Shown piece by piece: positions 2,932 to 51,700 of a stretch of 64,000 bases of DNA. This DNA is from Auanema rhodensis. Taxonomy: Eukaryota > Animalia > Nematoda. Position numbers and translations under genes: made by a program. Numbering within the stretch: position 1 is the first letter of the stretch; every line of letters starts with the position of its first letter. Below the pieces are notes generated by a model. It searched no databases. It was not told the origin of the DNA and saw only the letters and a list, made by a program, of their open reading frames with translations. The DNA lies in contig OZ059899.1 in the NCBI GenBank assembly GCA_964057225.1, forward strand, positions 12,028,001 through 12,092,000. The letters run 5' to 3'.

Positions 2932-3213
2932 CCTATTCTAGCTGGATGGCTTAACTATACGAAAATAAATAAAATTAACAAGATTGAATCGAATTTCAAT
3001 GAGTGAGTTAATTCAAGCCAACTGGTAAAATCAGCTTTTGAGATGCACTGTTTTTACGCATAACCATGCGGCAAATAAACTTGCTGTTTGTACGAGAGGC
3101 GGACCGAAAATCGGGTTGTGCGCTTGCTTATGAGCGCAGTGTATTTAATTCCTTTTTATTATTTACAAAATCTTTTTGTAATATTTGTTCATTACTCTAT
3201 TATCTTCAGCTTT

Positions 3214-12568: not shown

Positions 12569-12795
12569 CTAGAATGGGGGAGGACCATTCACAAATTCTA
12601 AAGATGGATCAAAACTTCTTGCAAAATTGTTTAAAAGCTGACAGCAATACTCGTCATCGCAGTGGGGAACCAAGCAGGCGGCTCCGAGAAGCAGAACCAG
12701 CATAGCCTGAAAGATTGGAATGATTAGAAAATAATCAAATGTTTGTATATCTTACCTGCAAAGGCAATGCTGTTCTTAAAACCCGTCTCCATCTT
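12569..12795 (-). other. anc-1: KASH domain (TM helix + lumenal peptide ending PPPF), split by intron 12707-12755
   Basis: Hydrophobic ALPLQAMLVLLLGAACLVP, conserved Cys, terminal GPPPF*. Confidence 0.97.
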
Positions 12796-15700
12796 GAGCG
12801 TTGTCTACGGAATTGAGGATTAGCTAAAGCTTCATCGTCAGGCATTGGGGAGAATCTGCCTTCAGATGAATCCTCGGTAGACATTTCACTCGTATCGGCT
12901 TCGGAAGGAATTCCTTCAATTCCATGTTGTCGAAGCACTTGGTATGGATCATCAACATATAAAGCGGCTAATAGATTAGCAGCGGCGTCCACATCATATT
13001 CTCGTTCTTCGTTATCTTCACTACTGTCAGGGATATTTCTTAGTGATTCCAGAAGTTCATGGGCCCGAGCTTGAAGTCTCTCAAGTTCACTAGATGTGCT
13101 GCTTCTAATGAACTGACGACCATTAGCGCTGCGCTCCACAATAACCATCTGGTTATCAAGATGAGCAATTATATCGTTCAAAAGAGATTCGCGGCTCTGA
13201 AATCATGATATCAGGGATGTTTAGTTTAAGAAACTGCTTACCATTCGATTATTTCGTACGCCATCTTCACCATGAAGCTCTTCATGGCATTGATCAAGTT
13301 CGGTAGTAAGAATAGCTAGAGTTCGATTCAATTCTAGCTCTTCAGTAAGTTCGTTTGAGAGTTTTTGTAATAATTCCTGTACAAGGCATTCAATTAGAAA
13401 AAGAAAATAATTTCAACCAAACCTCAAGATTTCTTTCATTCGATTCTATATCAACATCTATGAAACGTTTTTCTTGTTCAGCCACATTCAGTGGATGAAG
13501 TAGAATGACAAAATCTTCAAGAGTTACAGCCTGACCTTTAGCTGTTTCATTAACATTAACAAGTTCCTGAAAAAAATCAAAATCATTATAGGTATGGAAA
13601 ACTGGGTATACCTTCATCACATTCATATATTCTTCTCCTTCTTCGGTGCTCATTAATTCTTTTTCTGCTGAAGACCTCAGTTCTCCAAGTACCAAATCAG
13701 CTTGTTTTTGAACCAATTCAAGCAGATCTATGAATTTTAGCCAAATGCTAGCACGATCGTGGAGGATTGGAACGATCTGGTTGGCAGCATCTATGGTTTG
13801 GCGGAGAGCTTGGACAGTTGGTTCATCAGATGGAGCAGAAGCAACAATGTCTTCAGCATGCTTCACTTCCTTGGCTATCACTTCAGCAGATGGTCTATAT
13901 TGCTCTGGAGATCCTTGGGCATCTTGAATAAGATTGTTAGCATCATTAACCAAGCGGGCAAGGTTGGATTGAGCAGGTACAGTCTTGGATTGAAGATCGG
14001 CAAGTTCCTTCTCCTTCTGTTGCTTCTCTTGCAGAGCAGCTTGGCGCTTCTGAAAAAATTGAATTAAGTTTGATGAAAATGAAAGATAAGTACTCACCTC
14101 AAGTAATTCTTGAGTAGTATTCAAGCGCTTCAGAAGCTCGTCATGTTCCTTCTTCTGTGCATCATCGAGAACATTGACATCTACGTTGGCAACATTCTCA
14201 CGGAGCTTCTCCAAAGCATCACGGTCTCTGGCAATTGCTTGTAGAAGCTGCTCATCAGACAATTCAGATGGTTCGTCTGTGTACTTGGATGTGATGGCAA
14301 GCAAGTTGTCCTCAGCATCCTTGCGAGCACTGTTGAAGGCAGCAAGGGCAGCCATCTTATCTCCAACCATGTCACCAAGTTGTTTCAGAAGTTCTTTCAG
14401 TTTTGATAAATTCCAAGAGCTCTTCTGGCGTTCTTCATCACCTTCAGGTCCTTCAGGAATTTCGTCCATTAGAGCTTCGAGACGTGCCTTGGCAGATTGA
14501 AGGTCTTCAAGCGAAGCCTGTTGTTCAGCAAGGGTCTCTGGCATCTTTTCAGGTCTGTTGTTGATGGATTGAGCAATAAGCTGGAGTTCAGGAGCGATCT
14601 GGTTGAGCTTAACAGAGTCGGCAAGAGTAGCTTGCTTATCAGCAGCATTACGAACTAACTCATCAACCTTTGACTTCAAGTCCTTCACAAGGTCGCTGTC
14701 GTTGACGACATCAGCGTTGTTGTTCTTCAACTCGTTCTCGTGGGCTTCGATGTTCTTGGCAAGCTGGTTAACTTCATCCTTAAGGTTGTCCATAACAGGA
14801 ACAGCTCTCTCGGAATCAGCAAGTTGAACGTTGTTCAAAGCATCGGTAAGTTGTTTCAATTGATTGTTCATGTTCTTGTTATCCTCACGAAGCTTGTGCT
14901 CTTGTGGAAGTGACTTCTCGAGGGGTGAAGCCAAGCTCTTAGCTTGTTCCTTCATCTCATGAGCAGTTCGAGCCAATTGTGGTGTTGAGCTCTCGATGTC
15001 AGCTACATCGATTGAAGCAATGATCTTCTGAAGCTTAGCAAGTTCCTCGTCAACGTTATCGATTGGTTGTGGTGATTGCAAAGCCTTGGCAATAGCTTCT
15101 ACCTCTTCCTTGTCCTTGTTCAACTTGGCTGTAACGTCGTTGAGCTTCTCTTCAGCTCGGACAGCTTCATCAAGTTGCTTGTCAGCCTTAGCGTTGAGGT
15201 CGTGTGTTCTGGCAATGAGCTTGTTCTTCTTCTCATCATCCATGCTGGCGGATGGTACAGCTTCAACGACGGCCATCAATTCAGCTAGTTTGGGTACGAT
15301 GTTCTTCTTGAATTCAGAGAGTTCATCAACAGATGCAAGTCCAGGTAAGACATCTTCAGCCTTCTTCAGCTCATCTTCAACATCCTTCAAAGCATTCTCA
15401 GCTCTCTTGGCTTCTTCTTCTTCGGCAGTCTTTTTGACCAAATCATCGGAAGTCTTATCAGACAACTGCTTCAAGTTGTTTTCGAGGTTGTCAGCCTTCT
15501 GGCGATCAGAAGCTGGAAGTGGAGCATCAGAAAGAGCAGCCAATTTGTCTGTCAAATCCTTGATCTTATCAAGCTTAGCTTGTAGAGCCTCAGCATTTTC
15601 ATCTTCAGCCTTATCAGCAGCCTTCTTTCCTTTACCCTTCTTACTCTTCTTTGCTGGAGCAGCAGGTTGGGCAAGAGCGTTAGCTTGATCATCGATTTCA

Positions 15701-18700
15701 GCCAATTGCTTTTGAGCAGCCTTTACAGCTTCGTTGTGTTTCTTCTTAGCTTCCTCAGCATCATCAAGCTTCTTGCGGAGCTCGTTTTGCTGATCTTCTG
15801 GAAGTTGGGCAAGGCTTCGGCGAAGTTCTTCAATCTGGTCTTCGGATAATTCTTCAATTGGCTTCTGTTGCAAGTCATTAACCTTGATGGTAATAAGTTG
15901 AATAACTTCTTCTTCTTCGGCTTGTTTCAAGCGATCCTTAGCTTCTTCAAGCGATTTCTCCAATTTAGGTAATTGTTCAGCCAGAGCAGCAATGATGTTG
16001 GCTTCGTCTGGCTTGACGTGCTTGTTTCCAGCTTGAAGTTCTTCCTTCTTCTCCTTGAGTACGTCCAATTGAGAACGAATAGCTGGGAGTTCGTGAGCTT
16101 CGAGGCTATCGATAACGTCAGCAGATGGTAGATCAGCCAAATGGCTGTTAAGCTGGTTGAGTTCTTTCTTGATGTGCTCAATGGAATCCATCAAGTTCTT
16201 CTCTTCTTCGATTTCATTGGTCAACTGGTCGAGAGCCTCAGCATATTGCTTATCAACCTGTTCAACATCAACATCTCTGAATCGTACGTCACTTAATGTG
16301 ATCTCCAAAGGATTGAGGAGCTCAGATAGACGTTGCATGTTGCGCATCTTATCAGCCAGGATGTCAGATGTTCGGCTTGCTTCACGCAATTTCTGGAGGT
16401 CGTCCTTGACTTCGTCCAGACTGCGTACAGGCTTATTGAGAACGGCATCAAGTGGTTCGTGGGAACGTTCAAGTTCATCATCAGTCTCATTACGAGCATC
16501 AACGAACTCGTCCCAGTTGGTGGCACGATCGTGGAGGATTGGAACGATCTGGTTGGCAGCATCTATGGTTTGGCGGAGAGCTTGGACAGTTGGTTCATCA
16601 GATGGAGCAGAAGCAACAATGTCTTCAGCATGCTTCACTTCCTTGGCTATCACTTCAGCAGATGGTCTATATTGCTCTGGAGATCCTTGGGCATCTTGAA
16701 TAAGATTGTTAGCATCATTAACCAAGCGGGCAAGGTTGGATTGAGCAGGTACAGTCTTGGATTGAAGATCGGCAAGTTCCTTCTCCTTCTGTTGCTTCTC
16801 TTGCAGAGCAGCTTGGCGCTTCTGAAAAAATTGAATTAAGTTTGATGAAAATGAAAGATAAGTACTCACCTCAAGTAATTCTTGAGTAGTATTCAAGCGC
16901 TTCAGAAGCTCGTCATGTTCCTTCTTCTGTGCATCATCGAGAACATTGACATCTACGTTGGCAACATTCTCACGGAGCTTCTCCAAAGCATCACGGTCTC
17001 TGGCAATTGCTTGTAGAAGCTGCTCATCAGACAATTCAGATGGTTCGTCTGTGTACTTGGATGTGATGGCAAGCAAGTTGTCTTCAGCATCCTTGCGAGC
17101 ACTGTTGAAGGCAGCAAGGGCAGCCATCTTATCTCCAACCATGTCACCAAGTTGTTTCAGAAGTTCTTTCAGTTTTGATAAATTCCAAGAGCTCTTCTGG
17201 CGTTCTTCATCACCTTCAGGTCCTTCAGGAATTTCGTCCATTAGAGCTTCGAGACGTGCCTTGGCAGATTGAAGGTCTTCAAGCGAAGCCTGTTGTTCAG
17301 CAAGGGTCTCTGGCATCTTTTCAGGTCTGTTGTTGATGGATTGAGCAATAAGCTGGAGTTCAGGAGCGATCTGGTTGAGCTTAACAGAGTCGGCAAGAGT
17401 AGCTTGCTTATCAGCAGCATTACGAACTAACTCATCAACCTTTGACTTCAAGTCCTTCACAAGGTCGCTGTCGTTGACGACATCAGCGTTGTTGTTCTTC
17501 AACTCGTTCTCGTGGGCTTCGATGTTCTTGGCAAGCTGGTTAACTTCATCCTTAAGGTTGTCCATAACAGGAACAGCTCTCTCGGAATCAGCAAGTTGAA
17601 CGTTGTTCAAAGCATCGGTAAGTTGTTTCAATTGATTGTTCATGTTCTTGTTATCCTCACGAAGCTTGTGCTCTTGTGGAAGTGACTTCTCGAGGGGTGA
17701 AGCCAAGCTCTTAGCTTGTTCCTTCATCTCATGAGCAGTTCGAGCCAATAGTGGTGTTGAGCTCTCGATGTCAGCTACATCGATTGAAGCAATGATCTTC
17801 TGAAGCTTAGCAAGTTCCTCGTCAACGTTATCGATTGGTTGTGGTGATTGCAAAGCCTTGGCAATAGCTTCTACCTCTTCCTTGTCCTTGTTCAACTTGG
17901 CTGTAACGTCGTTGAGCTTCTCTTCAGCTCGGACAGCTTCATCAAGTTGCTTGTCAGCCTTAGCGTTGAGGTCGTGTGTTCTGGCAATGAGCTTGTTCTT
18001 CTTCTCATCATCCATGCTGGCGGATGGTACAGCTTCAACGACGGCCATCAATTCAGCTAGTTTGGGTACGATGTTCTTCTTGAATTCAGAGAGTTCATCA
18101 ACAGATGCAAGTCCAGGTAAGACATCTTCAGCCTTCTTCAGCTCATCTTCAACATCCTTCAAAGCATTCTCAGCTCTCTTGGCTTCTTCTTCTTCGGCAG
18201 TCTTTTTGACCAAATCATCGGAAGTCTTATCAGACAACTGCTTCAAGTTGTTTTCGAGGTTGTCAGCCTTCTGGCGATCAGAAGCTGGAAGTGGAGCATC
18301 AGAAAGAGCAGCCAATTTGTCTGTCAAATCCTTGATCTTATCAAGCTTAGCTTGTAGAGCCTCAGCATTTTCATCTTCAGCCTTATCAGCAGCCTTCTTT
18401 CCTTTACCCTTCTTACTCTTCTTTGCTGGAGCAGCAGGTTGGGCAAGAGCGTTAGCTTGATCATCGATTTCAGCCAATTGCTTTTGAGCAGCCTTTACAG
18501 CTTCGTTGTGTTTCTTCTTAGCTTCCTCAGCATCATCAAGCTTCTTGCGGAGCTCGTTTTGCTGATCTTCTGGAAGTTGGGCAAGGCTTCGGCGAAGTTC
18601 TTCAATCTGGTCTTCGGATAATTCTTCAATTGGCTTCTGTTGCAAGTCATTAACCTTGATGGTAATAAGTTGAATAACTTCTTCTTCTTCGGCTTGTTTC

Positions 18701-21700
18701 AAGCGATCCTTAGCTTCTTCAAGCGATTTCTCCAATTTAGGTAATTGTTCAGCCAGAGCAGCAATGATGTTGGCTTCGTCTGGCTTGACGTGCTTGTTTC
18801 CAGCTTGAAGTTCTTCCTTCTTCTCCTTGAGTACGTCCAATTGAGAACGAATAGCTGGGAGTTCGTGAGCTTCGAGGCTATCGATAACGTCAGCAGATGG
18901 TAGATCAGCCAAATGGCTGTTAAGCTGGTTGAGTTCTTTCTTGATGTGCTCAATGGAATCCATCAAGTTCTTCTCTTCTTCGATTTCATTGGTCAACTGG
19001 TCGAGAGCCTCAGCATATTGCTTATCAACCTGTTCAACATCAACATCTCTGAATCGTACGTCACTTAATGTGATCTCCAAAGGATTGAGGAGCTCAGATA
19101 GACGTTGCATGTTGCGCATCTTATCAGCCAGGATGTCAGATGTTCGGCTTGCTTCACGCAATTTCTGGAGGTCGTCCTTGACTTCGTCCAGACTGCGTAC
19201 AGGCTTATTGAGAACGGCATCAAGTGGTTCGTGGGAACGTTCAAGTTCATCATCAGTCTCATTACGAGCATCAACGAACTCGTCCCAGTTGGTGGCACGA
19301 TCGTGGAGGATTGGAACGATCTGGTTGGCAGCATCTATGGTTTGGCGGAGAGCTTGGACAGTTGGTTCATCAGATGGAGCAGAAGCAACAATGTCTTCAG
19401 CATGCTTCACTTCCTTGGCTATCACTTCAGCAGATGGTCTATATTGCTCTGGAGATCCTTGGGCATCTTGAATAAGATTGTTAGCATCATTAACCAAGCG
19501 GGCAAGGTTGGATTGAGCAGGTACAGTCTTGGATTGAAGATCGGCAAGTTCCTTCTCCTTCTGTTGCTTCTCTTGCAGAGCAGCTTGGCGCTTCTGAAAA
19601 AATTGAATTAAGTTTGATGAAAATGAAAGATAAGTACTCACCTCAAGTAATTCTTGAGTAGTATTCAAGCGCTTCAGAAGCTCGTCATGTTCCTTCTTCT
19701 GTGCATCATCGAGAACATTGACATCTACGTTGGCAACATTCTCACGGAGCTTCTCCAAAGCATCACGGTCTCTGGCAATTGCTTGTAGAAGCTGCTCATC
19801 AGACAATTCAGATGGTTCGTCTGTGTACTTGGATGTGATGGCAAGCAAGTTGTCCTCAGCATCCTTGCGAGCACTATTGAAGGCAGCAAGGGCAGCCATC
19901 TTATCTCCAACCATGTCACCAAGTTGTTCCAGAAGTTCTTTCAGTTTTGATAAATTCCAAGAGCTCTTCTGGCGTTCTTCATCACCTTCAGGTCCTTCAG
20001 GAATTTTGTCCATTAGAGCTTCGAGACGTGCCTTGGCAGATTGAAGGTCTTCAAGCGAAGCCTGTTGTTCAGCAAGGGTCTCTGGCATCTTTTCAGGTCT
20101 GTTGTTGATGGATTGAGCAATAAGCTGGAGTTCAGGAGCGATCTGGTTGAGCTTAACAGAGTCGGCAAGAGTAGCTTGCTTATCAGCAGCATTACGAACT
20201 AACTCATCAACCTTTGACTTCAAGTCCTTCACAAGGTCGCTGTCGTTGACGACATCAGCGTTGTTGTTCTTCAACTCGTTCTCGTGGGCTTCGATGTTCT
20301 TGGCAAGCTGGTTAACTTCATCCTTAAGGTTGTCCATAACAGGAACAGCTCTCTCGGAATCAGCAAGTTGAACGTTGTTCAAAGCATCGGTAAGTTGTTT
20401 CAATTGATTGTTCATGTTCTTGTTATCCTCACGAAGCTTGTGCTCTTGTGGAAGTGACTTCTCGAGGGGTGAAGCCAAGCTCTTAGCTTGTTCCTTCATC
20501 TCATGAGCAGTTCGAGCCAATTGTGGTGTTGAGCTCTCGATGTCAGCTACATCGATTGAAGCAATGATCTTCTGAAGCTTAGCAAGTTCCTCGTCAACGT
20601 TATCGATTGGTTGTGGTGATTGCAAAGCCTTGGCAATAGCTTCTACCTCTTCCTTGTCCTTGTTCAACTTGGCTGTAACGTCGTTGAGCTTCTCTTCAGC
20701 TCGGACAGCTTCATCAAGTTGCTTGTCAGCCTTAGCGTTGAGGTCGTGTGTTCTGGCAATGAGCTTGTTCTTCTTCTCATCATCCATGCTGGCGGATGGT
20801 ACAGCTTCAACGACGGCCATCAATTCAGCTAGTTTGGGTACGATGTTCTTCTTGAATTCAGAGAGTTCATCAACAGATGCAAGTCCAGGTAAGACATCTT
20901 CAGCCTTCTTCAGCTCATCTTCAACATCCTTCAAAGCATTCTCAGCTCTCTTGGCTTCTTCTTCTTCGGCAGTCTTTTTGACCAAATCATCGGAAGTCTT
21001 ATCAGACAACTGCTTCAAGTTGTTTTCGAGGTTGTCAGCCTTCTGGCGATCAGAAGCTGGAAGTGGAGCATCAGAAAGAGCAGCCAATTTGTCTGTCAAA
21101 TCCTTGATCTTATCAAGCTTAGCTTGTAGAGCCTCAGCATTTTCATCTTCAGCCTTATCAGCAGCCTTCTTTCCTTTACCCTTCTTACTCTTCTTTGCTG
21201 GAGCAGCAGGTTGGGCAAGAGCGTTAGCTTGATCATCGATTTCAGCCAATTGCTTTTGAGCAGCCTTTACAGCTTCGTTGTGTTTCTTCTTAGCTTCCTC
21301 AGCATCATCAAGCTTCTTGCGGAGCTCGTTTTGCTGATCTTCTGGAAGTTGGGCAAGGCTTCGGCGAAGTTCTTCAATCTGGTCTTCGGATAATTCTTCA
21401 ATTGGCTTCTGTTGCAAGTCATTAACCTTGATGGTAATAAGTTGAATAACTTCTTCTTCTTCGGCTTGTTTCAAGCGATCCTTAGCTTCTTCAAGCGATT
21501 TCTCCAATTTAGGTAATTGTTCAGCCAGAGCAGCAATGATGTTGGCTTCGTCTGGCTTGACGTGCTTGTTTCCAGCTTGAAGTTCTTCCTTCTTCTCCTT
21601 GAGTACGTCCAATTGAGAACGAATAGCTGGGAGTTCGTGAGCTTCGAGGCTATCGATAACGTCAGCAGATGGTAGATCAGCCAAATGGCTGTTAAGCTGG

Positions 21701-24700
21701 TTGAGTTCTTTCTTGATGTGCTCAATGGAATCCATCAAGTTCTTCTCTTCTTCGATTTCATTGGTCAACTGGTCGAGAGCCTCAGCATATTGCTTATCAA
21801 CCTGTTCAACATCAACATCTCTGAATCGTACGTCACTTAATGTGATCTCCAAAGGATTGAGGAGCTCAGATAGACGTTGCATGTTGCGCATCTTATCAGC
21901 CAGGATGTCCGATGTTCGGCTTGCTTCACGCAATTTCTGGAGGTCGTCCTTGACTTCGTCCAGACTGCGTACAGGCTTATTGAGAACGGCATCAAGTGGT
22001 TCGTGGGAACGTTCAAGTTCATCATCAGTCTCATTACGAGCATCAACGAACTCGTCCCAGTTGGTGGCACGATCGTGGAGGATTGGAACGATCTGGTTGG
22101 CAGCATCTATGGTTTGGCGGAGAGCTTGGACAGTTGGTTCATCAGATGGAGCAGAAGCAACAATGTCTTCAGCATGCTTCACTTCCTTGGCTATCACTTC
22201 AGCAGATGGTCTATATTGCTCTGGAGATCCTTGGGCATCTTGAATAAGATTGTTAGCATCATTAACCAAGCGGGCAAGGTTGGATTGAGCAGGTACAGTC
22301 TTGGATTGAAGATCGGCAAGTTCCTTCTCCTTCTGTTGCTTCTCTTGCAGAGCAGCTTGGCGCTTCTGAAAAAATTGAATTAAGTTTGATGAAAATGAAA
22401 GATAAGTACTCACCTCAAGTAATTCTTGAGTAGTATTCAAGCGCTTCAGAAGCTCGTCATGTTCCTTCTTCTGTGCATCATCGAGAACATTGACATCTAC
22501 GTTGGCAACATTCTCACGGAGCTTCTCCAAAGCATCACGGTCTCTGGCAATTGCTTGTAGAAGCTGCTCATCAGACAATTCAGATGGTTCGTCTGTGTAC
22601 TTGGATGTGATGGCAAGCAAGTTGTCCTCAGCATCCTTGCGAGCACTGTTGAAGGCAGCAAGGGCAGCCATCTTATCTCCAACCATGTCACCAAGTTGTT
22701 TCAGAAGTTCTTTCAGTTTTGATAAATTCCAAGAGCTCTTCTGGCGTTCTTCATCACCTTCAGGTCCTTCAGGAATTTCGTCCATTAGAGCTTCGAGACG
22801 TGCCTTGGCAGATTGAAGGTCTTCAAGCGAAGCCTGTTGTTCAGCAAGGGTCTCTGGCATCTTTTCAGGTCTGTTGTTGATGGATTGAGCAATAAGCTGG
22901 AGTTCAGGAGCGATCTGGTTAAGCTTAACAGAGTCGGCAAGAGTAGCTTGCTTATCAGCAGCATTACGAACTAACTCATCAACCTTTGACTTCAAGTCCT
23001 TCACAAGGTCGCTGTCGTTGACGACATCAGCGTTGTTGTTCTTCAACTCGTTCTCGTGGGCTTCGATGTTCTTGGCAAGCTGGTTAACTTCATCCTTAAG
23101 GTTGTCCATAACAGGAACAGCTCTCTCGGAATCAGCAAGTTGAACGTTGTTCAAAGCATCGGTAAGTTGTTTCAATTGATTGTTCATGTTCTTGTTATCC
23201 TCACGAAGCTTGTGCTCTTGTGGAAGTGACTTCTCGAGGGGTGAAGCCAAGCTCTTAGCTTGTTCCTTCATCTCATGAGCAGTTCGAGCCAATTGTGGTG
23301 TTGAGCTCTCGATGTCAGCTACATCGATTGAAGCAATGATCTTCTGAAGCTTAGCAAGTTCCTCGTCAACGTTATCGATTGGTTGTGGTGATTGCAAAGC
23401 CTTGGCAATAGCTTCTACCTCTTCCTTGTCCTTGTTCAACTTGGCTGTAACGTCGTTGAGCTTCTCTTCAGCTCGGACAGCTTCATCAAGTTGCTTGTCA
23501 GCCTTAGCGTTGAGGTCGTGTGTTCTGGCAATGAGCTTGTTCTTCTTCTCATCATCCATGCTGGCGGATGGTACAGCTTCAACGATGGCCATCAATTCAG
23601 CTAGTTTGGGTACGATGTTCTTCTTGAATTCAGAGAGTTCATCAACAGATGCAAGTCCAGGTAAGACATCTTCAGCCTTCTTCAGCTCATCTTCAACATC
23701 CTTCAAAGCATTCTCAGCTCTCTTGGCTTCTTCTTCTTCGGCAGTCTTTTTGACCAAATCATCGGAAGTCTTATCAGACAACTGCTTCAAGTTGTTTTCG
23801 AGGTTGTCAGCCTTCTGGCGATCAGAAGCTGGAAGTGGAGCATCAGAAAGAGCAGCCAATTTGTCTGTCAAATCCTTGATCTTATCAAGCTTAGCTTGTA
23901 GAGCCTCAGCATTTTCATCTTCAGCCTTATCAGCAGCCTTCTTTCCTTTACCCTTCTTACTCTTCTTTGCTGGAGCAGCAGGTTGGGCAAGAGCGTTAGC
24001 TTGATCATCGATTTCAGCCAATTGCTTTTGAGCAGCCTTTACAGCTTCGTTGTGTTTCTTCTTAGCTTCCTCAGCATCATCAAGCTTCTTGCGGAGCTCG
24101 TTTTGCTGATCTTCTGGAAGTTGGGCAAGGCTTCGGCGAAGTTCTTCAATCTGGTCTTCGGATAATTCTTCAATTGGCTTCTGTTGCAAGTCATTAACCT
24201 TGATGGTAATAAGTTGAATAACTTCTTCTTCTTCGGCTTGTTTCAAGCGATCCTTAGCTTCTTCAAGCGATTTCTCCAATTTAGGTAATTGTTCAGCCAG
24301 AGCAGCAATGATGTTGGCTTCGTCTGGCTTGACGTGCTTGTTTCCAGCTTGAAGTTCTTCCTTCTTCTCCTTGAGTACGTTCAATTGAGAACGAATAGCT
24401 GGGAGTTCGTGAGCTTCGAGGCTATCGATAACGTCAGCAGATGGTAGATCAGCCAAATGGCTGTTAAGCTGGTTGAGTTCTTTCTTGATGTGCTCAATGG
24501 AATCCATCAAGTTCTTCTCTTCTTCGATTTCATTGGTCAACTGGTCGAGAGCCTCAGCATATTGCTTATCAACCTGTTCAACATCAACATCTCTGAATCG
24601 TACGTCACTTAATGTGATCTCCAAAGGATTGAGGAGCTCAGATAGACGTTGCATGTTGCGCATCTTATCAGCCAGGATGTCAGATGTTCGGCTTGCTTCA

Positions 24701-39700: not shown

Positions 39701-42700
39701 TTCTTGGCAAGCTGGTTAACTTCATCCTTAAGGTTGTCCATAACAGGAACAGCTCTCTCGGAATCAGCAAGTTGAACGTTGTTCAAAGCATCGGTAAGTT
39801 GTTTCAATTGATTGTTCATGTTCTTGTTATCCTCACGAAGCTTGTGCTCTTGTGGAAGTGACTTCTCGAGGGGTGAAGCCAAGCTCTTAGCTTGTTCCTT
39901 CATCTCATGAGCAGTTCGAGCCAATTGTGGTGTTGAGCTCTCGATGTCAGCTACATCGATTGAAGCAATGATCTTCTGAAGCTTAGCAAGTTCCTCGTCA
40001 ACGTTATCGATTGGTTGTGGTGATTGCAAAGCCTTGGCAATAGCTTCTACCTCTTCCTTGTCCTTGTTCAACTTGGCTGTAACGTCGTTGAGCTTCTCTT
40101 CAGCTCGGACAGCTTCATCAAGTTGCTTGTCAGCCTTAGCGTTGAGGTCGTGTGTTCTGGCAATGAGCTTGTTCTTCTTCTCATCATCCATGCTGGCGGA
40201 TGGTACAGCTTCAACGACGGCCATCAATTCAGCTAGTTTGGGTACGATGTTCTTCTTGAATTCAGAGAGTTCATCAACAGATGCAAGTCCAGGTAAGACA
40301 TCTTCAGCCTTCTTCAGCTCATCTTCAACATCCTTCAAAGCATTCTCAGCTCTCTTGGCTTCTTCTTCTTCGGCAGTCTTTTTGACCAAATCATCGGAAG
40401 TCTTATCAGACAACTGCTTCAAGTTGTTTTCGAGGTTGTCAGCCTTCTGGCGATCAGAAGCTGGAAGTGGAGCATCAGAAAGAGCAGCCAATTTGTCTGT
40501 CAAATCCTTGATCTTATCAAGCTTAGCTTGTAGAGCCTCAGCATTTTCATCTTCAGCCTTATCAGCAGCCTTCTTTCCTTTACCCTTCTTACTCTTCTTT
40601 GCTGGAGCAGCAGGTTGGGCAAGAGCGTTAGCTTGATCATCGATTTCAGCCAATTGCTTTTGAGCAGCCTTTACAGCTTCGTTGTGTTTCTTCTTAGCTT
40701 CCTCAGCATCATCAAGCTTCTTGCGGAGCTCGTTTTGCTGATCTTCTGGAAGTTGGGCAAGGCTTCGGCGAAGTTCTTCAATCTGGTCTTCGGATAATTC
40801 TTCAATTGGCTTCTGTTGCAAGTCATTAACCTTGATGGTAATAAGTTGAATAACTTCTTCTTCTTCGGCTTGTTTCAAGCGATCCTTAGCTTCTTCAAGC
40901 GATTTCTCCAATTTAGGTAATTGTTCAGCCAGAGCAGCAATGATGTTGGCTTCGTCTGGCTTGACGTGCTTGTTTCCAGCTTGAAGTTCTTCCTTCTTCT
41001 CCTTGAGTACGTCCAATTGAGAACGAATAGCTGGGAGTTCGTGAGCTTCGAGGCTATCGATAACGTCAGCAGATGGTAGATCAGCCAAATGGCTGTTAAG
41101 CTGGTTGAGTTCTTTCTTGATGTGCTCAATGGAATCCATCAAGTTCTTCTCTTCTTCGATTTCATTGGTCAACTGGTCGAGAGCCTCAGCATATTGCTTA
41201 TCAACCTGTTCAACATCAACATCTCTGAATCGTACGTCACTTAATGTGATCTCCAAAGGATTGAGGAGCTCAGATAGACGTTGCATGTTGCGCATCTTAT
41301 CAGCCAGGATGTCAGATGTTCGGCTTGCTTCACGCAATTTCTGGAGGTCGTCCTTGACTTCGTCCAGACTGCGTACAGGCTTATTGAGAACGGCATCAAG
41401 TGGTTCGTGGGAACGTTCAAGTTCATCATCAGTCTCATTACGAGCATCAACGAACTCGTCCCAGTTGGTGGCACGATCGTGGAGGATTGGAACGATCTGG
41501 TTGGCAGCATCTATGGTTTGGCGGAGAGCTTGGACAGTTGGTTCATCAGATGGAGCAGAAGCAACAATGTCTTCAGCATGCTTCACTTCCTTGGCTATCA
41601 CTTCAGCAGATGGTCTATATTGCTCTGGAGATCCTTGGGCATCTTGAATAAGATTGTTAGCATCATTAACCAAGCGGGCAAGGTTGGATTGAGCAGGTAC
41701 AGTCTTGGATTGAAGATCGGCAAGTTCCTTCTCCTTCTGTTGCTTCTCTTGCAGAGCAGCTTGGCGCTTCTGAAAAAATTGAATTAAGTTTGATGAAAAT
41801 GAAAGATAAGTACTCACCTCAAGTAATTCTTGAGTAGTATTCAAGCGCTTCAGAAGCTCGTCATGTTCCTTCTTCTGTGCATCATCGAGAACATTGACAT
41901 CTACGTTGGCAACATTCTCACGGAGCTTCTCCAAAGCATCACGGTCTCTGGCAATTGCTTGTAGAAGCTGCTCATCAGACAATTCAGATGGTTCGTCTGT
42001 GTACTTGGATGTGATGGCAAGCAAGTTGTCCTCAGCATCCTTGCGAGCACTGTTGAAGGCAGCAAGGGCAGCCATCTTATCTCCAACCATGTCACCAAGT
42101 TGTTTCAGAAGTTCTTTCAGTTTTGATAAATTCCAAGAGCTCTTCTGGCGTTCTTCATCACCTTCAGGTCCTTCAGGAATTTCGTCCATTAGAGCTTCGA
42201 GACGTGCCTTGGCAGATTGAAGGTCTTCAAGCGAAGCCTGTTGTTCAGCAAGGGTCTCTGGCATCTTTTCAGGTCTGTTGTTGATGGATTGAGCAATAAG
42301 CTGGAGTTCAGGAGCGATCTGGTTGAGCTTAACAGAGTCGGCAAGAGTAGCTTGCTTATCAGCAGCATTACGAACTAACTCATCAACCTTTGACTTCAAG
42401 TCCTTCACAAGGTCGCTGTCGTTGACGACATCAGCGTTGTTGTTCTTCAACTCGTTCTCGTGGGCTTCGATGTTCTTGGCAAGCTGGTTAACTTCATCCT
42501 TAAGGTTGTCCATAACAGGAACAGCTCTCTCGGAATCAGCAAGTTGAACGTTGTTCAAAGCATCGGTAAGTTGTTTCAATTGATTGTTCATGTTCTTGTT
42601 ATCCTCACGAAGCTTGTGCTCTTGTGGAAGTGACTTCTCGAGGGGTGAAGCCAAGCTCTTAGCTTGTTCCTTCATCTCATGAGCAGTTCGAGCCAATTGT

Positions 42701-45700
42701 GGTGTTGAGCTCTCGATGTCAGCTACATCGATTGAAGCAATGATCTTCTGAAGCTTAGCAAGTTCCTCGTCAACGTTATCGATTGGTTGTGGTGATTGCA
42801 AAGCCTTGGCAATAGCTTCTACCTCTTCCTTGTCCTTGTTCAACTTGGCTGTAACGTCGTTGAGCTTCTCTTCAGCTCGGACAGCTTCATCAAGTTGCTT
42901 GTCAGCCTTAGCGTTGAGGTCGTGTGTTCTGGCAATAAGCTTGTTCTTCTTCTCATCATCCATGCTGGCGGATGGTACAGCTTCAACGACGGCCATCAAT
43001 TCAGCTAGTTTGGGTACGATGTTCTTCTTGAATTCAGAGAGTTCATCAACAGATGCAAGTCCAGGTAAGACATCTTCAGCCTTCTTCAGCTCATCTTCAA
43101 CATCCTTCAAAGCATTCTCAGCTCTCTTGGCTTCTTCTTCTTCGGCAGTCTTTTTGACCAAATCATCGGAAGTCTTATCAGACAACTGCTTCAAGTTGTT
43201 TTCGAGGTTGTCAGCCTTCTGGCGATCAGAAGCTGGAAGTGGAGCATCAGAAAGAGCAGCCAATTTGTCTGTCAAATCCTTGATCTTATCAAGCTTAGCT
43301 TGTAGAGCCTCAGCATTTTCATCTTCAGCCTTATCAGCAGCCTTCTTTCCTTTACCCTTCTTACTCTTCTTTGCTGGAGCAGCAGGTTGGGCAAGAGCGT
43401 TAGCTTGATCATCGATTTCAGCCAATTGCTTTTGAGCAGCCTTTACAGCTTCGTTGTGTTGCTTCTTAGCTTCCTCAGCATCATCAAGCTTCTTGCGGAG
43501 CTCGTTTTGCTGATCTTCTGGAAGTTGGGCAAGGCTTCGGCGAAGTTCTTCAATCTGGTCTTCGGATAATTCTTCAATTGGCTTCTGTTGCAAGTCATTA
43601 ACCTTGATGGTAATAAGTTGAATAACTTCTTCTTCTTCGGCTTGTTTCAAGCGATCCTTAGCTTCTTCAAGCGATTTCTCCAATTTAGGTAATTGTTCAG
43701 CCAGAGCAGCAATGATGTTGGCTTCGTCTGGCTTGACGTGCTTGTTTCCAGCTTGAAGTTCTTCCTTCTTCTCCTTGAGTACGTCCAATTGAGAACGAAT
43801 AGCTGGGAGTTCGTGAGCTTCGAGGCTATCGATAACGTCAGCAGATGGTAGATCAGCCAAATGGCTGTTAAGCTGGTTGAGTTCTTTCTTGATGTGCTCA
43901 ATGGAATCCATCAAGTTCTTCTCTTCTTCGATTTCATTGGTCAACTGGTCGAGAGCCTCAGCATATTGCTTATCAACCTGTTCAACATCAACATCTCTGA
44001 ATCGTACGTCACTTAATGTGATCTCCAAAGGATTGAGGAGCTCAGATAGACGTTGCATGTTGCGCATCTTATCAGCCAGGATGTCAGATGTTCGGCTTGC
44101 TTCACGCAATTTCTGGAGGTCGTCCTTGACTTCGTCCAGACTGCGTACAGGCTTATTGAGAACGGCATCAAGTGGTTCGTGGGAACGTTCAAGTTCATCA
44201 TCAGTCTCATTACGAGCATCAACGAACTCGTCCCAGTTGGTGGCACGATCGTGGAGGATTGGAACGATCTGGTTGGCAGCATCTATGGTTTGGCGGAGAG
44301 CTTGGACAGTTGGTTCATCAGATGGAGCAGAAGCAACAATGTCTTCAGCATGCTTCACTTCCTTGGCTATCACTTCAGCAGATGGTCTATATTGCTCTGG
44401 AGATCCTTGGGCATCTTGAATAAGATTGTTAGCATCATTAACCAAGCGGGCAAGGTTGGATTGAGCAGGTACAGTCTTGGATTGAAGATCGGCAAGTTCC
44501 TTCTCCTTCTGTTGCTTCTCTTGCAGAGCAGCTTGGCGCTTCTGAAAAAATTGAATTAAGTTTGATGAAAATGAAAGATAAGTACTCACCTCAAGTAATT
44601 CTTGAGTAGTATTCAAGCGCTTCAGAAGCTCGTCATGTTCCTTCTTCTGTGCATCATCGAGAACATTGACATCTACGTTGGCAACATTCTCACGGAGCTT
44701 CTCCAAAGCATCACGGTCTCTGGCAATTGCTTGTAGAAGCTGCTCATCAGACAATTCAGATGGTTCGTCTGTGTACTTGGATGTGATGGCAAGCAAGTTG
44801 TCCTCAGCATCCTTGCGAGCACTGTTGAAGGCAGCAAGGGCAGCCATCTTATCTCCAACCATGTCACCAAGTTGTTTCAGAAGTTCTTTCAGTTTTGATA
44901 AATTCCAAGAGCTCTTCTGGCGTTCTTCATCACCTTCAGGTCCTTCAGGAATTTCGTCCATTAGAGCTTCGAGACGTGCCTTGGCAGATTGAAGGTCTTC
45001 AAGCGAAGCCTGTTGTTCAGCAAGGGTCTCTGGCATCTTTTCAGGTCTGTTGTTGATGGATTGAGCAATAAGCTGGAGTTCAGGAGCGATCTGGTTGAGC
45101 TTAACAGAGTCGGCAAGAGTAGCTTGCTTATCAGCAGCATTACGAACTAACTCATCAACCTTTGACTTCAAGTCCTTCACAAGGTCGCTGTCGTTGACGA
45201 CATCAGCGTTGTTGTTCTTCAACTCGTTCTCGTGGGCTTCGATGTTCTTGGCAAGCTGGTTAACTTCATCCTTAAGGTTGTCCATAACAGGAACAGCTCT
45301 CTCGGAATCAGCAAGTTGAACGTTGTTCAAAGCATCGGTAAGTTGTTTCAATTGATTGTTCATGTTCTTGTTATCCTCACGAAGCTTGTGCTCTTGTGGA
45401 AGTGACTTCTCGAGGGGTGAAGCCAAGCTCTTAGCTTGTTCCTTCATCTCATGAGCAGTTCGAGCCAATTGTGGTGTTGAGCTCTCGATGTCAGCTACAT
45501 CGATTGAAGCAATGATCTTCTGAAGCTTAGCAAGTTCCTCGTCAACGTTATCGATTGGTTGTGGTGATTGCAAAGCCTTGGCAATAGCTTCTACCTCTTC
45601 CTTGTCCTTGTTCAACTTGGCTGTAACGTCGTTGAGCTTCTCTTCAGCTCGGACAGCTTCATCAAGTTGCTTGTCAGCCTTAGCGTTGAGGTCGTGTGTT

Positions 45701-48700
45701 CTGGCAATGAGCTTGTTCTTCTTCTCATCATCCATGCTGGCGGATGGTACAGCTTCAACGACGGCCATCAATTCAGCTAGTTTGGGTACGATGTTCTTCT
45801 TGAATTCAGAGAGTTCATCAACAGATGCAAGTCCAGGTAAGACATCTTCAGCCTTCTTCAGCTCATCTTCAACATCCTTCAAAGCATTCTCAGCTCTCTT
45901 GGCTTCTTCTTCTTCGGCAGTCTTTTTGACCAAATCATCGGAAGTCTTATCAGACAACTGCTTCAAGTTGTTTTCGAGGTTGTCAGCCTTCTGGCGATCA
46001 GAAGCTGGAAGTGGAGCATCAGAAAGAGCAGCCAATTTGTCTGTCAAATCCTTGATCTTATCAAGCTTAGCTTGTAGAGCCTCAGCATTTTCATCTTCAG
46101 CCTTATCAGCAGCCTTCTTTCCTTTACCCTTCTTACTCTTCTTTGCTGGAGCAGCAGGTTGGGCAAGAGCGTTAGCTTGATCATCGATTTCAGCCAATTG
46201 CTTTTGAGCAGCCTTTACAGCTTCGTTGTGTTTCTTCTTAGCTTCCTCAGCATCATCAAGCTTCTTGCGGAGCTCGTTTTGCTGATCTTCTGGAAGTTGG
46301 GCAAGGCTTCGGCGAAGTTCTTCAATCTGGTCTTCGGATAATTCTTCAATTGGCTTCTGTTGCAAGTCATTAACCTTGATGGTAATAAGTTGAATAACTT
46401 CTTCTTCTTCGGCTTGTTTCAAGCGATCCTTAGCTTCTTCAAGCGATTTCTCCAATTTAGGTAATTGTTCAGCCAGAGCAGCAATGATGTTGGCTTCGTC
46501 TGGCTTGACGTGCTTGTTTCCAGCTTGAAGTTCTTCCTTCTTCTCCTTGAGTACGTTCAATTGAGAACGAATAGCTGGGAGTTCGTGAGCTTCGAGGCTA
46601 TCGATAACGTCAGCAGATGGTAGATCAGCCAAATGGCTGTTAAGCTGGTTGAGTTCTTTCTTGATGTGCTCAATGGAATCCATCAAGTTCTTCTCTTCTT
46701 CGATTTCATTGGTCAACTGGTCGAGAGCCTCAGCATATTGCTTATCAACCTGTTCAACATCAACATCTCTGAATCGTACGTCACTTAATGTGATCTCCAA
46801 AGGATTGAGGAGCTCAGATAGACGTTGCATGTTGCGCATCTTATCAGCCAGGATGTCAGATGTTCGGCTTGCTTCACGCAATTTCTGGAGGTCGTCCTTG
46901 ACTTCGTCCAGACTGCGTACAGGCTTATTGAGAACGGCATCAAGTGGTTCGTGGGAACGTTCAAGTTCATCATCAGTCTCATTACGAGCATCAACGAACT
47001 CGTCCCAGTTGGTGGCACGATCGTGGAGGATTGGAACGATCTGGTTGGCAGCATCTATGGTTTGGCGGAGAGCTTGGACAGTTGGTTCATCAGATGGAGC
47101 AGAAGCAACAATGTCTTCAGCATGCTTCACTTCCTTGGCTATCACTTCAGCAGATGGTCTATATTGCTCTGGAGATCCTTGGGCATCTTGAATAAGATTG
47201 TTAGCATCATTAACCAAGCGGGCAAGGTTGGATTGAGCAGGTACAGTCTTGGATTGAAGATCGGCAAGTTCCTTCTCCTTCTGTTGCTTCTCTTGCAGAG
47301 CAGCTTGGCGCTTCTGAAAAAATTGAATTAAGTTTGATGAAAATGAAAGATAAGTACTCACCTCAAGTAATTCTTGAGTAGTATTCAAGCGCTTCAGAAG
47401 CTCGTCATGTTCCTTCTTCTGTGCATCATCGAGAACATTGACATCTACGTTGGCAACATTCTCACGGAGCTTCTCCAAAGCATCACGGTCTCTGGCAATT
47501 GCTTGTAGAAGCTGCTCATCAGACAATTCAGATGGTTCGTCTGTGTACTTGGATGTGATGGCAAGCAAGTTGTCCTCAGCATCCTTGCGAGCACTGTTGA
47601 AGGCAGCAAGGGCAGCCATCTTATCTCCAACCATGTCACCAAGTTGTTTCAGAAGTTCTTTCAGTTTTGATAAATTCCAAGAGCTCTTCTGGCGTTCTTC
47701 ATCACCTTCAGGTCCTTCAGGAATTTCGTCCATTAGAGCTTCGAGACGTGCCTTGGCAGATTGAAGGTCTTCAAGCGAAGCCTGTTGTTCAGCAAGGGTC
47801 TCTGGCATCTTTTCAGGTCTGTTGTTGATGGATTGAGCAATAAGCTGGAGTTCAGGAGCGATCTGGTTGAGCTTAACAGAGTCGGCAAGAGTAGCTTGCT
47901 TATCAGCAGCATTACGAACTAACTCATCAACCTTTGACTTCAAGTCCTTCACAAGGTCGCTGTCGTTGACGACATCAGCGTTGTTGTTCTTCAACTCGTT
48001 CTCGTGGGCTTCGATGTTCTTGGCAAGCTGGTTAACTTCATCCTTAAGGTTGTCCATAACAGGAACAGCTCTCTCGGAATCAGCAAGTTGAACGTTGTTC
48101 AAAGCATCGGTAAGTTGTTTCAATTGATTGTTCATGTTCTTGTTATCCTCACGAAGCTTGTGCTCTTGTGGAAGTGACTTCTCGAGGGGTGAAGCCAAGC
48201 TCTTAGCTTGTTCCTTCATCTCATGAGCAGTTCGAGCCAATTGTGGTGTTGAGCTCTCGATGTCAGCTACATCGATTGAAGCAATGATCTTCTGAAGCTT
48301 AGCAAGTTCCTCGTCAACGTTATCGATTGGTTGTGGTGATTGCAAAGCCTTGGCAATAGCTTCTACCTCTTCCTTGTCCTTGTTCAACTTGGCTGTAACG
48401 TCGTTGAGCTTCTCTTCAGCTCGGACAGCTTCATCAAGTTGCTTGTCAGCCTTAGCGTTGAGGTCGTGTGTTCTGGCAATGAGCTTGTTCTTCTTCTCAT
48501 CATCCATGCTGGCGGATGGTACAGCTTCAACGACGGCCATCAATTCAGCTAGTTTGGGTACGATGTTCTTCTTGAATTCAGAGAGTTCATCAACAGATGC
48601 AAGTCCAGGTAAGACATCTTCAGCCTTCTTCAGCTCATCTTCAACATCCTTCAAAGCATTCTCAGCTCTCTTGGCTTCTTCTTCTTCGGCAGTCTTTTTG

Positions 48701-51700
48701 ACCAAATCATCGGAAGTCTTATCAGACAACTGCTTCAAGTTGTTTTCGAGGTTGTCAGCCTTCTGGCGATCAGAAGCTGGAAGTGGAGCATCAGAAAGAG
48801 CAGCCAATTTGTCTGTCAAATCCTTGATCTTATCAAGCTTAGCTTGTAGAGCCTCAGCATTTTCATCTTCAGCCTTATCAGCAGCCTTCTTTCCTTTACC
48901 CTTCTTACTCTTCTTTGCTGGAGCAGCAGGTTGGGCAAGAGCGTTAGCTTGATCATCGATTTCAGCCAATTGCTTTTGAGCAGCCTTTACAGCTTCGTTG
49001 TGTTTCTTCTTAGCTTCCTCAGCATCATCAAGCTTCTTGCGGAGCTCGTTTTGCTGATCTTCTGGAAGTTGGGCAAGGCTTCGGCGAAGTTCTTCAATCT
49101 GGTCTTCGGATAATTCTTCAATTGGCTTCTGTTGCAAGTCATTAACCTTGATGGTAATAAGTTGAATAACTTCTTCTTCTTCGGCTTGTTTCAAGCGATC
49201 CTTAGCTTCTTCAAGCGATTTCTCCAATTTAGGTAATTGTTCAGCCAGAGCAGCAATGATGTTGGCTTCGTCTGGCTTGACGTGCTTGTTTCCAGCTTGA
49301 AGTTCTTCCTTCTTCTCCTTGAGTACGTCCAATTGAGAACGAATAGCTGGGAGTTCGTGAGCTTCGAGGCTATCGATAACGTCAGCAGATGGTAGATCAG
49401 CCAAATGGCTGTTAAGCTGGTTGAGTTCTTTCTTGATGTGCTCAATGGAATCCATCAAGTTCTTCTCTTCTTCGATTTCATTGGTCAACTGGTCGAGAGC
49501 CTCAGCATATTGCTTATCAACCTGTTCAACATCAACATCTCTGAATCGTACGTCACTTAATGTGATCTCCAAAGGATTGAGGAGCTCAGATAGACGTTGC
49601 ATGTTGCGCATCTTATCAGCCAGGATGTCAGATGTTCGGCTTGCTTCACGCAATTTCTGGAGGTCGTCCTTGACTTCGTCCAGACTGCGTACAGGCTTAT
49701 TGAGAACGGCATCAAGTGGTTCGTGGGAACGTTCAAGTTCATCATCAGTCTCATTACGAGCATCAACGAACTCGTCCCAGTTGGTGGCACGATCGTGGAG
49801 GATTGGAACGATCTGGTTGGCAGCATCTATGGTTTGGCGGAGAGCTTGGACAGTTGGTTCATCAGATGGAGCAGAAGCAACAATGTCTTCAGCATGCTTC
49901 ACTTCCTTGGCTATCACTTCAGCAGATGGTCTATATTGCTCTGGAGATCCTTGGGCATCTTGAATAAGATTGTTAGCATCATTAACCAAGCGGGCAAGGT
50001 TGGATTGAGCAGGTACAGTCTTGGATTGAAGATCGGCAAGTTCCTTCTCCTTCTGTTGCTTCTCTTGCAGAGCAGCTTGGCGCTTCTGAAAAAATTGAAT
50101 TAAGTTTGATGAAAATGAAAGATAAGTACTCACCTCAAGTAATTCTTGAGTAGTATTCAAGCGCTTCAGAAGCTCGTCATGTTCCTTCTTCTGTGCATCA
50201 TCGAGAACATTGACATCTACGTTGGCAACATTCTCACGGAGCTTCTCCAAAGCATCACGGTCTCTGGCAATTGCTTGTAGAAGCTGCTCATCAGACAATT
50301 CAGATGGTTCGTCTGTGTACTTGGATGTGATGGCAAGCAAGTTGTCCTCAGCATCCTTGCGAGCACTATTGAAGGCAGCAAGGGCAGCCATCTTATCTCC
50401 AACCATGTCACCAAGTTGTTCCAGAAGTTCTTTCAGTTTTGATAAATTCCAAGAGCTCTTCTGGCGTTCTTCATCACCTTCAGGTCCTTCAGGAATTTCG
50501 TCCATTAGAGCTTCGAGACGTGCCTTGGCAGATTGAAGGTCTTCAAGCGAAGCCTGTTGTTCAGCAAGGGTCTCTGGCATCTTTTCAGGTCTGTTGTTGA
50601 TGGATTGAGCAATAAGCTGGAGTTCAGGAGCGATCTGGTTGAGCTTAACAGAGTCGGCAAGAGTAGCTTGCTTATCAGCAGCATTACGAACTAACTCATC
50701 AACCTTTGACTTCAAGTCCTTCACAAGGTCGCTGTCGTTGACGACATCAGCGTTGTTGTTCTTCAACTCGTTCTCGTGGGCTTCGATGTTCTTGGCAAGC
50801 TGGTTAACTTCATCCTTAAGGTTGTCCATAACAGGAACAGCTCTCTCGGAATCAGCAAGTTGAACGTTGTTCAAAGCATCGGTAAGTTGTTTCAATTGAT
50901 TGTTCATGTTCTTGTTATCCTCACGAAGCTTGTGCTCTTGTGGAAGTGACTTCTCGAGGGGTGAAGCCAAGCTCTTAGCTTGTTCCTTCATCTCATGAGC
51001 AGTTCGAGCCAATTGTGGTGTTGAGCTCTCGATGTCAGCTACATCGATTGAAGCAATGATCTTCTGAAGCTTAGCAAGTTCCTCGTCAACGTTATCGATT
51101 GGTTGTGGTGATTGCAAAGCCTTGGCAATAGCTTCTACCTCTTCCTTGTCCTTGTTCAACTTGGCTGTAACGTCGTTGAGCTTCTCTTCAGCTCGGACAG
51201 CTTCATCAAGTTGCTTGTCAGCCTTAGCGTTGAGGTCGTGTGTTCTGGCAATGAGCTTGTTCTTCTTCTCATCATCCATGCTGGCGGATGGTACAGCTTC
51301 AACGACGGCCATCAATTCAGCTAGTTTGGGTACGATGTTCTTCTTGAATTCAGAGAGTTCATCAACAGATGCAAGTCCAGGTAAGACATCTTCAGCCTTC
51401 TTCAGCTCATCTTCAACATCCTTCAAAGCATTCTCAGCTCTCTTGACTTCTTCTTCTTCGGCAGTCTTTTTGACCAAATCATCGGAAGTCTTATCAGACA
51501 ACTGCTTCAAGTTGTTTTCGAGGTTGTCAGCCTTCTGGCGATCAGAAGCTGGAAGTGGAGCATCAGAAAGAGCAGCCAATTTGTCTGTCAAATCCTTGAT
51601 CTTATCAAGCTTAGCTTGTAGAGCCTCAGCATTTTCATCTTCAGCCTTATCAGCAGCCTTCTTTCCTTTACCCTTCTTACTCTTCTTTGCTGGAGCAGCA

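Follow-up and report, generated by a model that had tools for sequence, protein, structure and literature searches.

Fourteen identical copies of a probable phase-0 intron in the giant repeat array of the Auanema rhodensis anc-1 orthologue

The stretch of DNA considered here, called the window in what follows, comprises 64,000 nt of the genome of the nematode Auanema rhodensis (assembly GCA_964057225.1, contig OZ059899.1, positions 12,028,001 to 12,092,000 of the forward strand), and all coordinates are counted from its first nucleotide. Its minus strand carries a gene that, judged from its sequence, is the orthologue of nematode anc-1 (nesprin-1/-2) and that contains a tandem array of giant repeats with a period of 2772 bp, in which a 48-nt element is found in 14 identical copies. 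This element is very probably an ordinary spliceosomal intron in phase 0 that occupies an ancient position and was copied together with the whole repeat unit.

The anc-1 orthologue and its giant repeats

The assignment of the gene to anc-1 follows from the ANC-1 families detected in the repeated exon, from the collinearity of the locus with a known ANC-1 protein and from the KASH domain encoded by the last exon. In a Pfam profile search the 908-residue exon matched PF24611 (1.2e-32) and PF24615 (1.8e-15), together with PF24531 at 1.8e-05, which is below the cut-off; all three families were built on the nuclear anchorage protein 1 of nematodes. In tblastn searches ANC-1 of Caenorhabditis brenneri is collinear with the minus strand, the match starting with residue 365 (window position 63903) and reaching the C terminus at 12572. 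The last coding exon, located at 12572-12706 of the minus strand, encodes a transmembrane span and a KASH domain (PF10541, 8.8e-20) directly followed by the stop codon, and shares 91% identity with the C terminus of the C. brenneri protein. At the other end, the upstream exons with their short introns extend over 54817-63903 of the minus strand, as recognised by tblastn with C. brenneri ANC-1 residues 365-1700 and by sequence reading; the gene continues 5' past the window, and its N-terminal part, where the pair of calponin-homology domains of a nesprin would be located, lies beyond the high-coordinate end.

The repeats are only 33-42% identical in protein sequence to those of Caenorhabditis. 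A word search of a protein library with the 908-residue exon alone gave no match within its length range; word searches made in a long-protein context recovered distant ANC-1 only, from C. brenneri, Aphelenchoides besseyi, C. nigoni, and Dirofilaria immitis, and a representative library searched with an unspliced 416-residue stretch returned 86 ANC-1 fragments, the best of which was 40% identical. An AlphaFold2 model built on an alignment is all-helical with a mean predicted local distance difference test score (pLDDT) of 88.7, and a Foldseek comparison of this model with the PDB gave weak matches only, the best being the alpha-actinin rod and the spectrin repeats of plectin. An Rfam scan of window positions 46000-56000 gave no match.

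The array itself, delimited by a periodicity scan, occupies 13740-51957 on the minus strand and consists of 13.79 units of 2772 bp, each formed by an exon of 2724 nt (908 aa) and the 48-nt intron. Near-identical giant repeats have already been described for anc-1 of Caenorhabditis elegans, which contains six tandem repeats, each 903 residues long, with nearly 100% identity at the nucleotide level (PMC8139857), and what is new here is another giant ANC-1 of that type. The two genes have in common a giant KASH protein, ANC-1 spectrin-like domains, near-identical units of about 900 residues and the same ...RASIW... edge of the array; in contrast, C. elegans has six units of 903 residues while 13.8 units of 908 residues are present here, and the sequences of the repeats have diverged to the low identity given above. 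The expanded copy number is more notable than the intron and, compared with the six repeats of C. elegans, where repeat number affects nuclear and endoplasmic reticulum (ER) anchorage, it is of interest for the tuning of rod length.

The 48-nt element and its counterparts in other nematodes

A search of the window with the 48-nt pattern, in which up to three mismatches were allowed, gave 14 matches, all on the minus strand and with 0 mismatches each, while 0 are expected in shuffled sequences. The copies are spaced exactly 2772 bp apart and, in transcript order, are located at 50086-50133, 47314-47361, 44542-44589, 41770-41817, 38998-39045, 36226-36273, 33454-33501, 30682-30729, 27910-27957, 25138-25185, 22366-22413, 19594-19641, 16822-16869, and 14050-14097, so that 14 introns are found in an array of 13.79 units. 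In the element, which begins at a codon boundary and is 3 x 16 nt long, none of the 16 codons is a stop; the first-pass annotation, which had described an identical, in-frame and stop-free 48-nt element in 14 repeat units, is thus confirmed by 14/14 exact copies in phase 0 with a length divisible by three. All the copies have the same splice context, with the donor GAG|GTGAGT and the acceptor TTTTCAG|A (for the last copy the context was also read directly in the sequence), and the GC content falls to 0.25 in comparison to 0.46 in the exon.

The copies lie in an open frame of 13,461 codons that extends over 13393-53775 of the minus strand. This frame reaches as far as 13393 because a single-copy intron of 45 nt located just after the array, at 13567-13611 (GTATAC...TTTTTTTCAG; read in the sequence), is likewise in phase 0, divisible by three and stop-free; its exon boundary is conserved in two homologues, at aa 1023|1024 of P0006 and at aa 661|662 of P0007. 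The stop that ends the open frame is held by the following intron, of 46 nt and in phase 0, at 13377-13422, whose flanking exons, of 48 and 45 aa, have the sizes given in the gene model of P0007. Such a frame of 40 kb tempts annotation based on open reading frames (ORFs) into 14 x 16 + 15 spurious residues, which the comparison with homologues places in introns.

Protein comparisons put a gap exactly at the element. In BLASTP against C. brenneri ANC-1 an exact gap of 16 residues lies opposite the peptide that the intron would encode, in each of three repeats, and when 26 segments of homologues spanning the boundary were aligned with MAFFT the occupancy was 0/26 in exactly the 16 intron columns and 26/26 in the flanks. 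The boundary, which reads LLE|KRQ on either side of the first copy, faces this 16-column gap in 26/26 homologues. A phase-0 intron is present at the homologous codon boundary in the genomic sequences of six other nematodes. It measures 282 nt with four in-frame stops in L001 (GCA_904845305.1), 3737 and 3837 nt with many stops in two neighbouring units of L004 (GCA_019055375.1), and 519 nt with 12 stops in L005 (GCA_036418205.1); in L007 (Logan contig), L008 (ENA contig), and L009 (Logan contig) it measures 92, 107, and 44 nt respectively, lengths that are not divisible by three. In three of these six relatives the automatic gene call enters the intron, starts with the Val encoded at the donor GT and stops after 10-14 codons, and the uninterrupted ORF contigs of three relatives (L002, L003, and L006), which resemble spliced transcripts, are without the insert.

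The frame that stays open through all copies would also be in keeping with a coding, unspliced segment, namely a lineage-specific insertion of 16 residues in every repeat. This possibility is extremely unlikely in view of the homologues, 0/26 of which have residues in a gap of exactly 16 columns, and of the six nematode sequences with an intron at the same boundary; moreover, the canonical splice signals and the drop of the GC content to 0.25 speak against it, and the peptide would be hydrophobic and aromatic inside a charged helical rod. The gap in the homologues and the introns at the same boundary in relatives sustain the earlier proposal that the element is an intron, as far as sequence comparison can indicate. 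The repeat intron of anc-1 is ancient, since its boundary and phase recur in seven nematode lineages, among which its length ranges between 44 nt and 3.8 kb.

A second intron of 66-98 nt occurs in each unit of L004 and L005, 272 residues upstream of the conserved boundary, and is absent from the 908-residue exon of A. rhodensis; it could have been either lost in this worm or gained in the relatives.

Homogeneity of the array

The 13 full units differ from one another by 0-8 nt in pairwise comparisons, with a mean of 2.26 in 2772 (0.08%), and 7/13 of them (units 0, 3-7, and 12 in transcript order) are mutually identical over 2772 bp; across the 38 kb of the array there are no indels. The variable columns are 19 and all exonic, five of them being due to fraying at two edges, and the 14 internal ones are divided into seven synonymous and seven nonsynonymous. 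The variants are concentrated in units 8-11 (transcript order; window positions 16870-27957), and the same variant states were found in units 1 and 9, in units 8 and 11, and in the leading partial unit and unit 10. Variants common to non-adjacent units suggest conversion or multi-unit or unequal exchange. Unit offsets 59, 2537, and 2558 are examples of variable positions found less than about 240 nt from a junction.

The identity of seven full units over 2772 bp and the lack of even one indel in 38 kb could also reflect an artefact, in which the count of 14 or the identity of the units is inflated by collapse, expansion or consensus polishing in the assembly. This explanation is unlikely, although it is compatible with the preferred one, the nature of the intron being unaffected: variants specific to single units are resolved in 14 internal columns, a part of them common to non-adjacent units as in a real array, and other nematodes, C. 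elegans included, have the same near-identity.

The absence of variation in the intron has to be read against this background. Among the 48 intron columns 0.33 variable ones are expected and 0 were observed, the probability of none being 0.72; an invariant stretch of 48 nt is expected (P about 0.7) because any two full units have, on average, about 2 differences over their 2772 nt. For the same reason intron invariance as a sign of constraint on the intron itself was considered and rejected, with only 0.33 variants to be expected. The uniformity of the intron and of the synonymous sites matches that of the remaining unit, a pattern that supports DNA-level homogenisation, and an invariant intron gives no information in addition to that of the synonymous sites. 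The first-pass annotation had taken the uniform intron as a pointer to concerted evolution or a recent expansion; the DNA-level homogenisation is supported, but the intron itself contributes almost no independent information in its favour.

The behaviour of the intron in a less homogeneous array is instructive. Neighbouring units of the relative L004 have exons that are 82-86% identical, while the homologous intron is 71% identical with many gaps; since the intron is more diverged than the exons, the repeat intron drifts freely when homogenisation is slow. The homogeneity of the units varies among nematodes, being 82-86% between neighbours in L004 and about 99% elsewhere. In particular, the ANC-1 repeats of C. 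brenneri have a period of 904 residues and 98.5% identity, and those of Dirofilaria immitis a period of 1436 residues and 99% identity. The length of the giant-repeat unit changes with the nematode lineage, with values of about 596, 876, 903/904, 908, and 1436 residues (P0001-P0006; loci L002, L003, L007, and L008).

Contigs of four other nematodes (L002, L003, L007, and L008) close on themselves with a k-1 overlap, like collapsed tandem arrays. For L007 and L008, the two that are genomic, the intron forms part of the closed unit. Near-identity of whole units, with the intron included, is a general feature of nematode anc-1 arrays, which represent a good natural case of concerted evolution inside coding sequence.

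Two groups of data concern the age of the array. Just after it, at 13393-13739 of the minus strand, there is a diverged partial copy of the unit, an old partial repeat. In a tree that included this segment and the corresponding ones of P0001 (5158-5280), P0006 (968-1092), and P0007 (607-729), the flank copies of the four species cluster together, apart from all in-array copies, with a support of 98/100; this grouping indicates that the array boundary is old. In addition, the ...RASIW... position at which the array has its 3' edge is common to A. rhodensis, C. brenneri, and C. elegans, the edge of the last being the one visible in the CRISPR repair templates of PMC8139857. The comparison of these sequences supports the homogenisation of an old array, which is favoured over a wholly new one.

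The preferred reading can be formulated as follows. The 48-nt element would be an ordinary phase-0 spliceosomal intron, most likely removed constitutively, placed at an ancient position inside the giant repeat of about 900 residues, in the long helix predicted to join two spectrin-like bundles. The unit that is copied and homogenised at the DNA level would be the whole 2772-bp block, exon plus intron, and the 14 intron copies would show no difference because the block is homogenised as a whole. Unequal crossing-over together with gene conversion within the array, as in C. elegans anc-1, is the likely mechanism. The length divisible by three and the lack of stops would be incidental properties of one short, G-poor and T-rich intron, whose 14 copies count as one evolutionary event.

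Some considerations weigh against this reading. Splicing in this worm is deduced from its sequence and from the comparison with relatives; the perfect identity of units could partly be a product of assembly polishing; and a low retention of each intron, multiplied by 14 copies, hits many transcripts, so that a stop-free intron may bring some selective benefit. A search for sequencing runs gave four runs of one study, all in the form of contigs and of uncertain type, which share 0.69-0.71 of the words.

Arrays that evolve in concert by unequal crossing-over and gene conversion, such as ribosomal DNA (rDNA), offer a useful parallel: as here, the units of one species are almost the same while those of different species have strongly diverged, non-coding parts are homogenised too, and copies at the edges escape the process and diverge. 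What distinguishes the anc-1 array is its location in a protein-coding gene, where the frame has to be kept by every unit.

Intron retention, repeat number and the remaining features of the locus

Nine distinct introns of the gene were read by eye in the window and checked against the exon maps of relatives. They measure 42, 45, 45, 46, 46, 48, 49, 50, and 52 nt, with a GC content of 0.19-0.25 (0.19-0.24 for those other than the repeat intron), and the 48-nt element is therefore in the middle of their size range; four are divisible by three and two of these are also stop-free. Besides the repeat intron and the two introns that lie just after the array, the sequence of the minus strand includes an intron of 45 nt at 13197-13241, in phase 0 and divisible by three, which contains in-frame TAA and TGA codons, an intron of 49 nt at 12707-12755, before the KASH exon, and, upstream of the arrays, introns of 46 nt (54817-54862), 50 nt (54914-54963), and 52 nt (55183-55234). 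The ninth belongs to a second tandem array on the same strand, found by Tandem Repeats Finder (TRF) at 53504-54786, in which a unit of 348 bp is present in 3.7 copies with 99% identity and, by sequence reading, is formed by an exon of 306 nt and an intron of 42 nt. This intron (53776-53817, with more copies at 54124-54165 and 54472-54513) is in phase 0 and divisible by three, and contains no in-frame stop other than the TAG of its acceptor. The presence of two tandem arrays in anc-1 indicates that blocks of exon plus intron were duplicated twice in one gene.

The probability that a 48-nt phase-0 intron is stop-free is 0.44 with the composition of the other introns and 0.57-0.58 with its own composition; multiplied by 1/3 for a length divisible by three, this gives 0.15-0.19, and the 14 copies count as one event. 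Among the seven homologous intron copies of the six relatives, 0/7 are both divisible by three and stop-free.

These values bear on the idea that the element is a selected fail-safe, or an optional segment similar to an exitron: a message of 47 kb with 14 intron copies could not afford nonsense-mediated decay (NMD) each time that a copy is retained, and retained copies would add 16 residues to the helix between the bundles. The intron is in frame and stop-free, as this idea requires, and simple arithmetic shows that a retention of 1-2% per intron over 14 copies would involve roughly 13-25% of the transcripts. The AlphaFold2 model places the boundary within one continuous helix of 80 residues that joins two helical bundles, and the inserted 16 residues are also modelled as helix, so that the insert might be sterically tolerated. 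A retained copy would lengthen this helix by 16 mostly hydrophobic residues, which by helix geometry would correspond to ~2.4 nm and a turn of ~160 degrees; retention would therefore not truncate the protein and would instead change the phase of the neighbouring bundles with respect to each other. Moreover, stop-free introns with a length divisible by three are presented in PMC5014332 as the class that escapes NMD in organisms with short introns.

Nevertheless, a selected function of this type is decidedly unlikely. Chance accounts for a single event with the probability of 0.15-0.19 given above, and none of the intron copies of the six relatives has the combined property, though several of these relatives have multi-copy arrays. 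Within anc-1 itself the single-copy intron of 45 nt at 13567-13611 has the same property, while the 42-nt intron of the second array, which is also multiplied, ends in an in-frame TAG. The composition of the element is typical of introns and not of coding sequence as in exitrons (GC 0.25 vs 0.46), and its strong splice signals argue for efficient removal. Of the earlier suggestion that retention provides a fail-safe against NMD, what stands is that retention keeps the frame; nothing was found that speaks for selection, given the value expected by chance and the relatives that are without the property.

Short stop-free introns divisible by three are described as a class that escapes NMD and is under-represented, which has been read as selection against them (Jaillon et al. 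2008, cited in PMC5014332). The 48-nt intron resembles this class in being short, divisible by three and without in-frame stops, so that a retained copy would be translated through; in contrast, it represents one instance multiplied by DNA duplication, and the frequency of 2/9 among the distinct introns of the gene is in line with chance.

In exitrons, which lie within annotated coding exons, the composition resembles that of coding sequence and the form with the segment retained serves as the reference protein (Marquez et al. 2015, PMC4484396). The element shares with them a segment divisible by three inside an open frame, in which both splicing and retention keep the frame, but it has the composition of an intron and a CAG acceptor with a U-rich tract, and no homologue contains it. 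The identification as an exitron was thus discarded, with a GC content of 0.25 vs 0.46 and 16 residues present in no homologue.

A further possibility concerns the number of repeats in the mature message. The 14 donors and the 14 acceptors are identical and in phase 0, and the exon is open and divisible by three; any donor joined to any downstream acceptor would yield an in-frame ANC-1 with 1-14 repeats, and back-splicing to upstream acceptors would yield circular molecules of n x 2724 nt whose open frame never ends. Such a ladder of isoforms would be invisible to short reads because every alternative junction, linear or back-spliced, has the sequence of the normal junction. It would matter if true: in C. 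elegans the number of repeats is relevant to function, and a protein with one repeat causes an intermediate anchorage defect (PMC8139857).

In nematodes a short intron is recognised as one unit, mostly co-transcriptionally. A donor of the array has its nearest acceptor at a distance of 48 nt and the following one at 2820 nt, and with recognition of this kind the pairing of adjacent splice sites should dominate. The anc-1 isoforms on record for C. elegans are distinguished by their 5' ends, and a literature search for long-read data on anc-1 isoforms gave nothing relevant. On balance a repeat-number ladder is very unlikely, and there is an equally slight probability for its broader version, in which the length of ANC-1 would be set at the RNA level by splicing or back-splicing between repeats and the stop-free intron would be kept since retention in a message of 47 kb is too costly.

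Two other features were observed in the low-coordinate part of the window, downstream of anc-1. On the plus strand, at about 3088-8160, a gene similar to those of the oxysterol-binding protein (OSBP) family is indicated by ORF fragments in which a PH domain was detected at 4.3e-05 and the oxysterol-binding protein domain at 1.8e-12. Between this OSBP-like gene and anc-1, at 11667-11693, lies a tandem repeat with a unit of 12 nt (CCAGGACCTGGA x 2.2).

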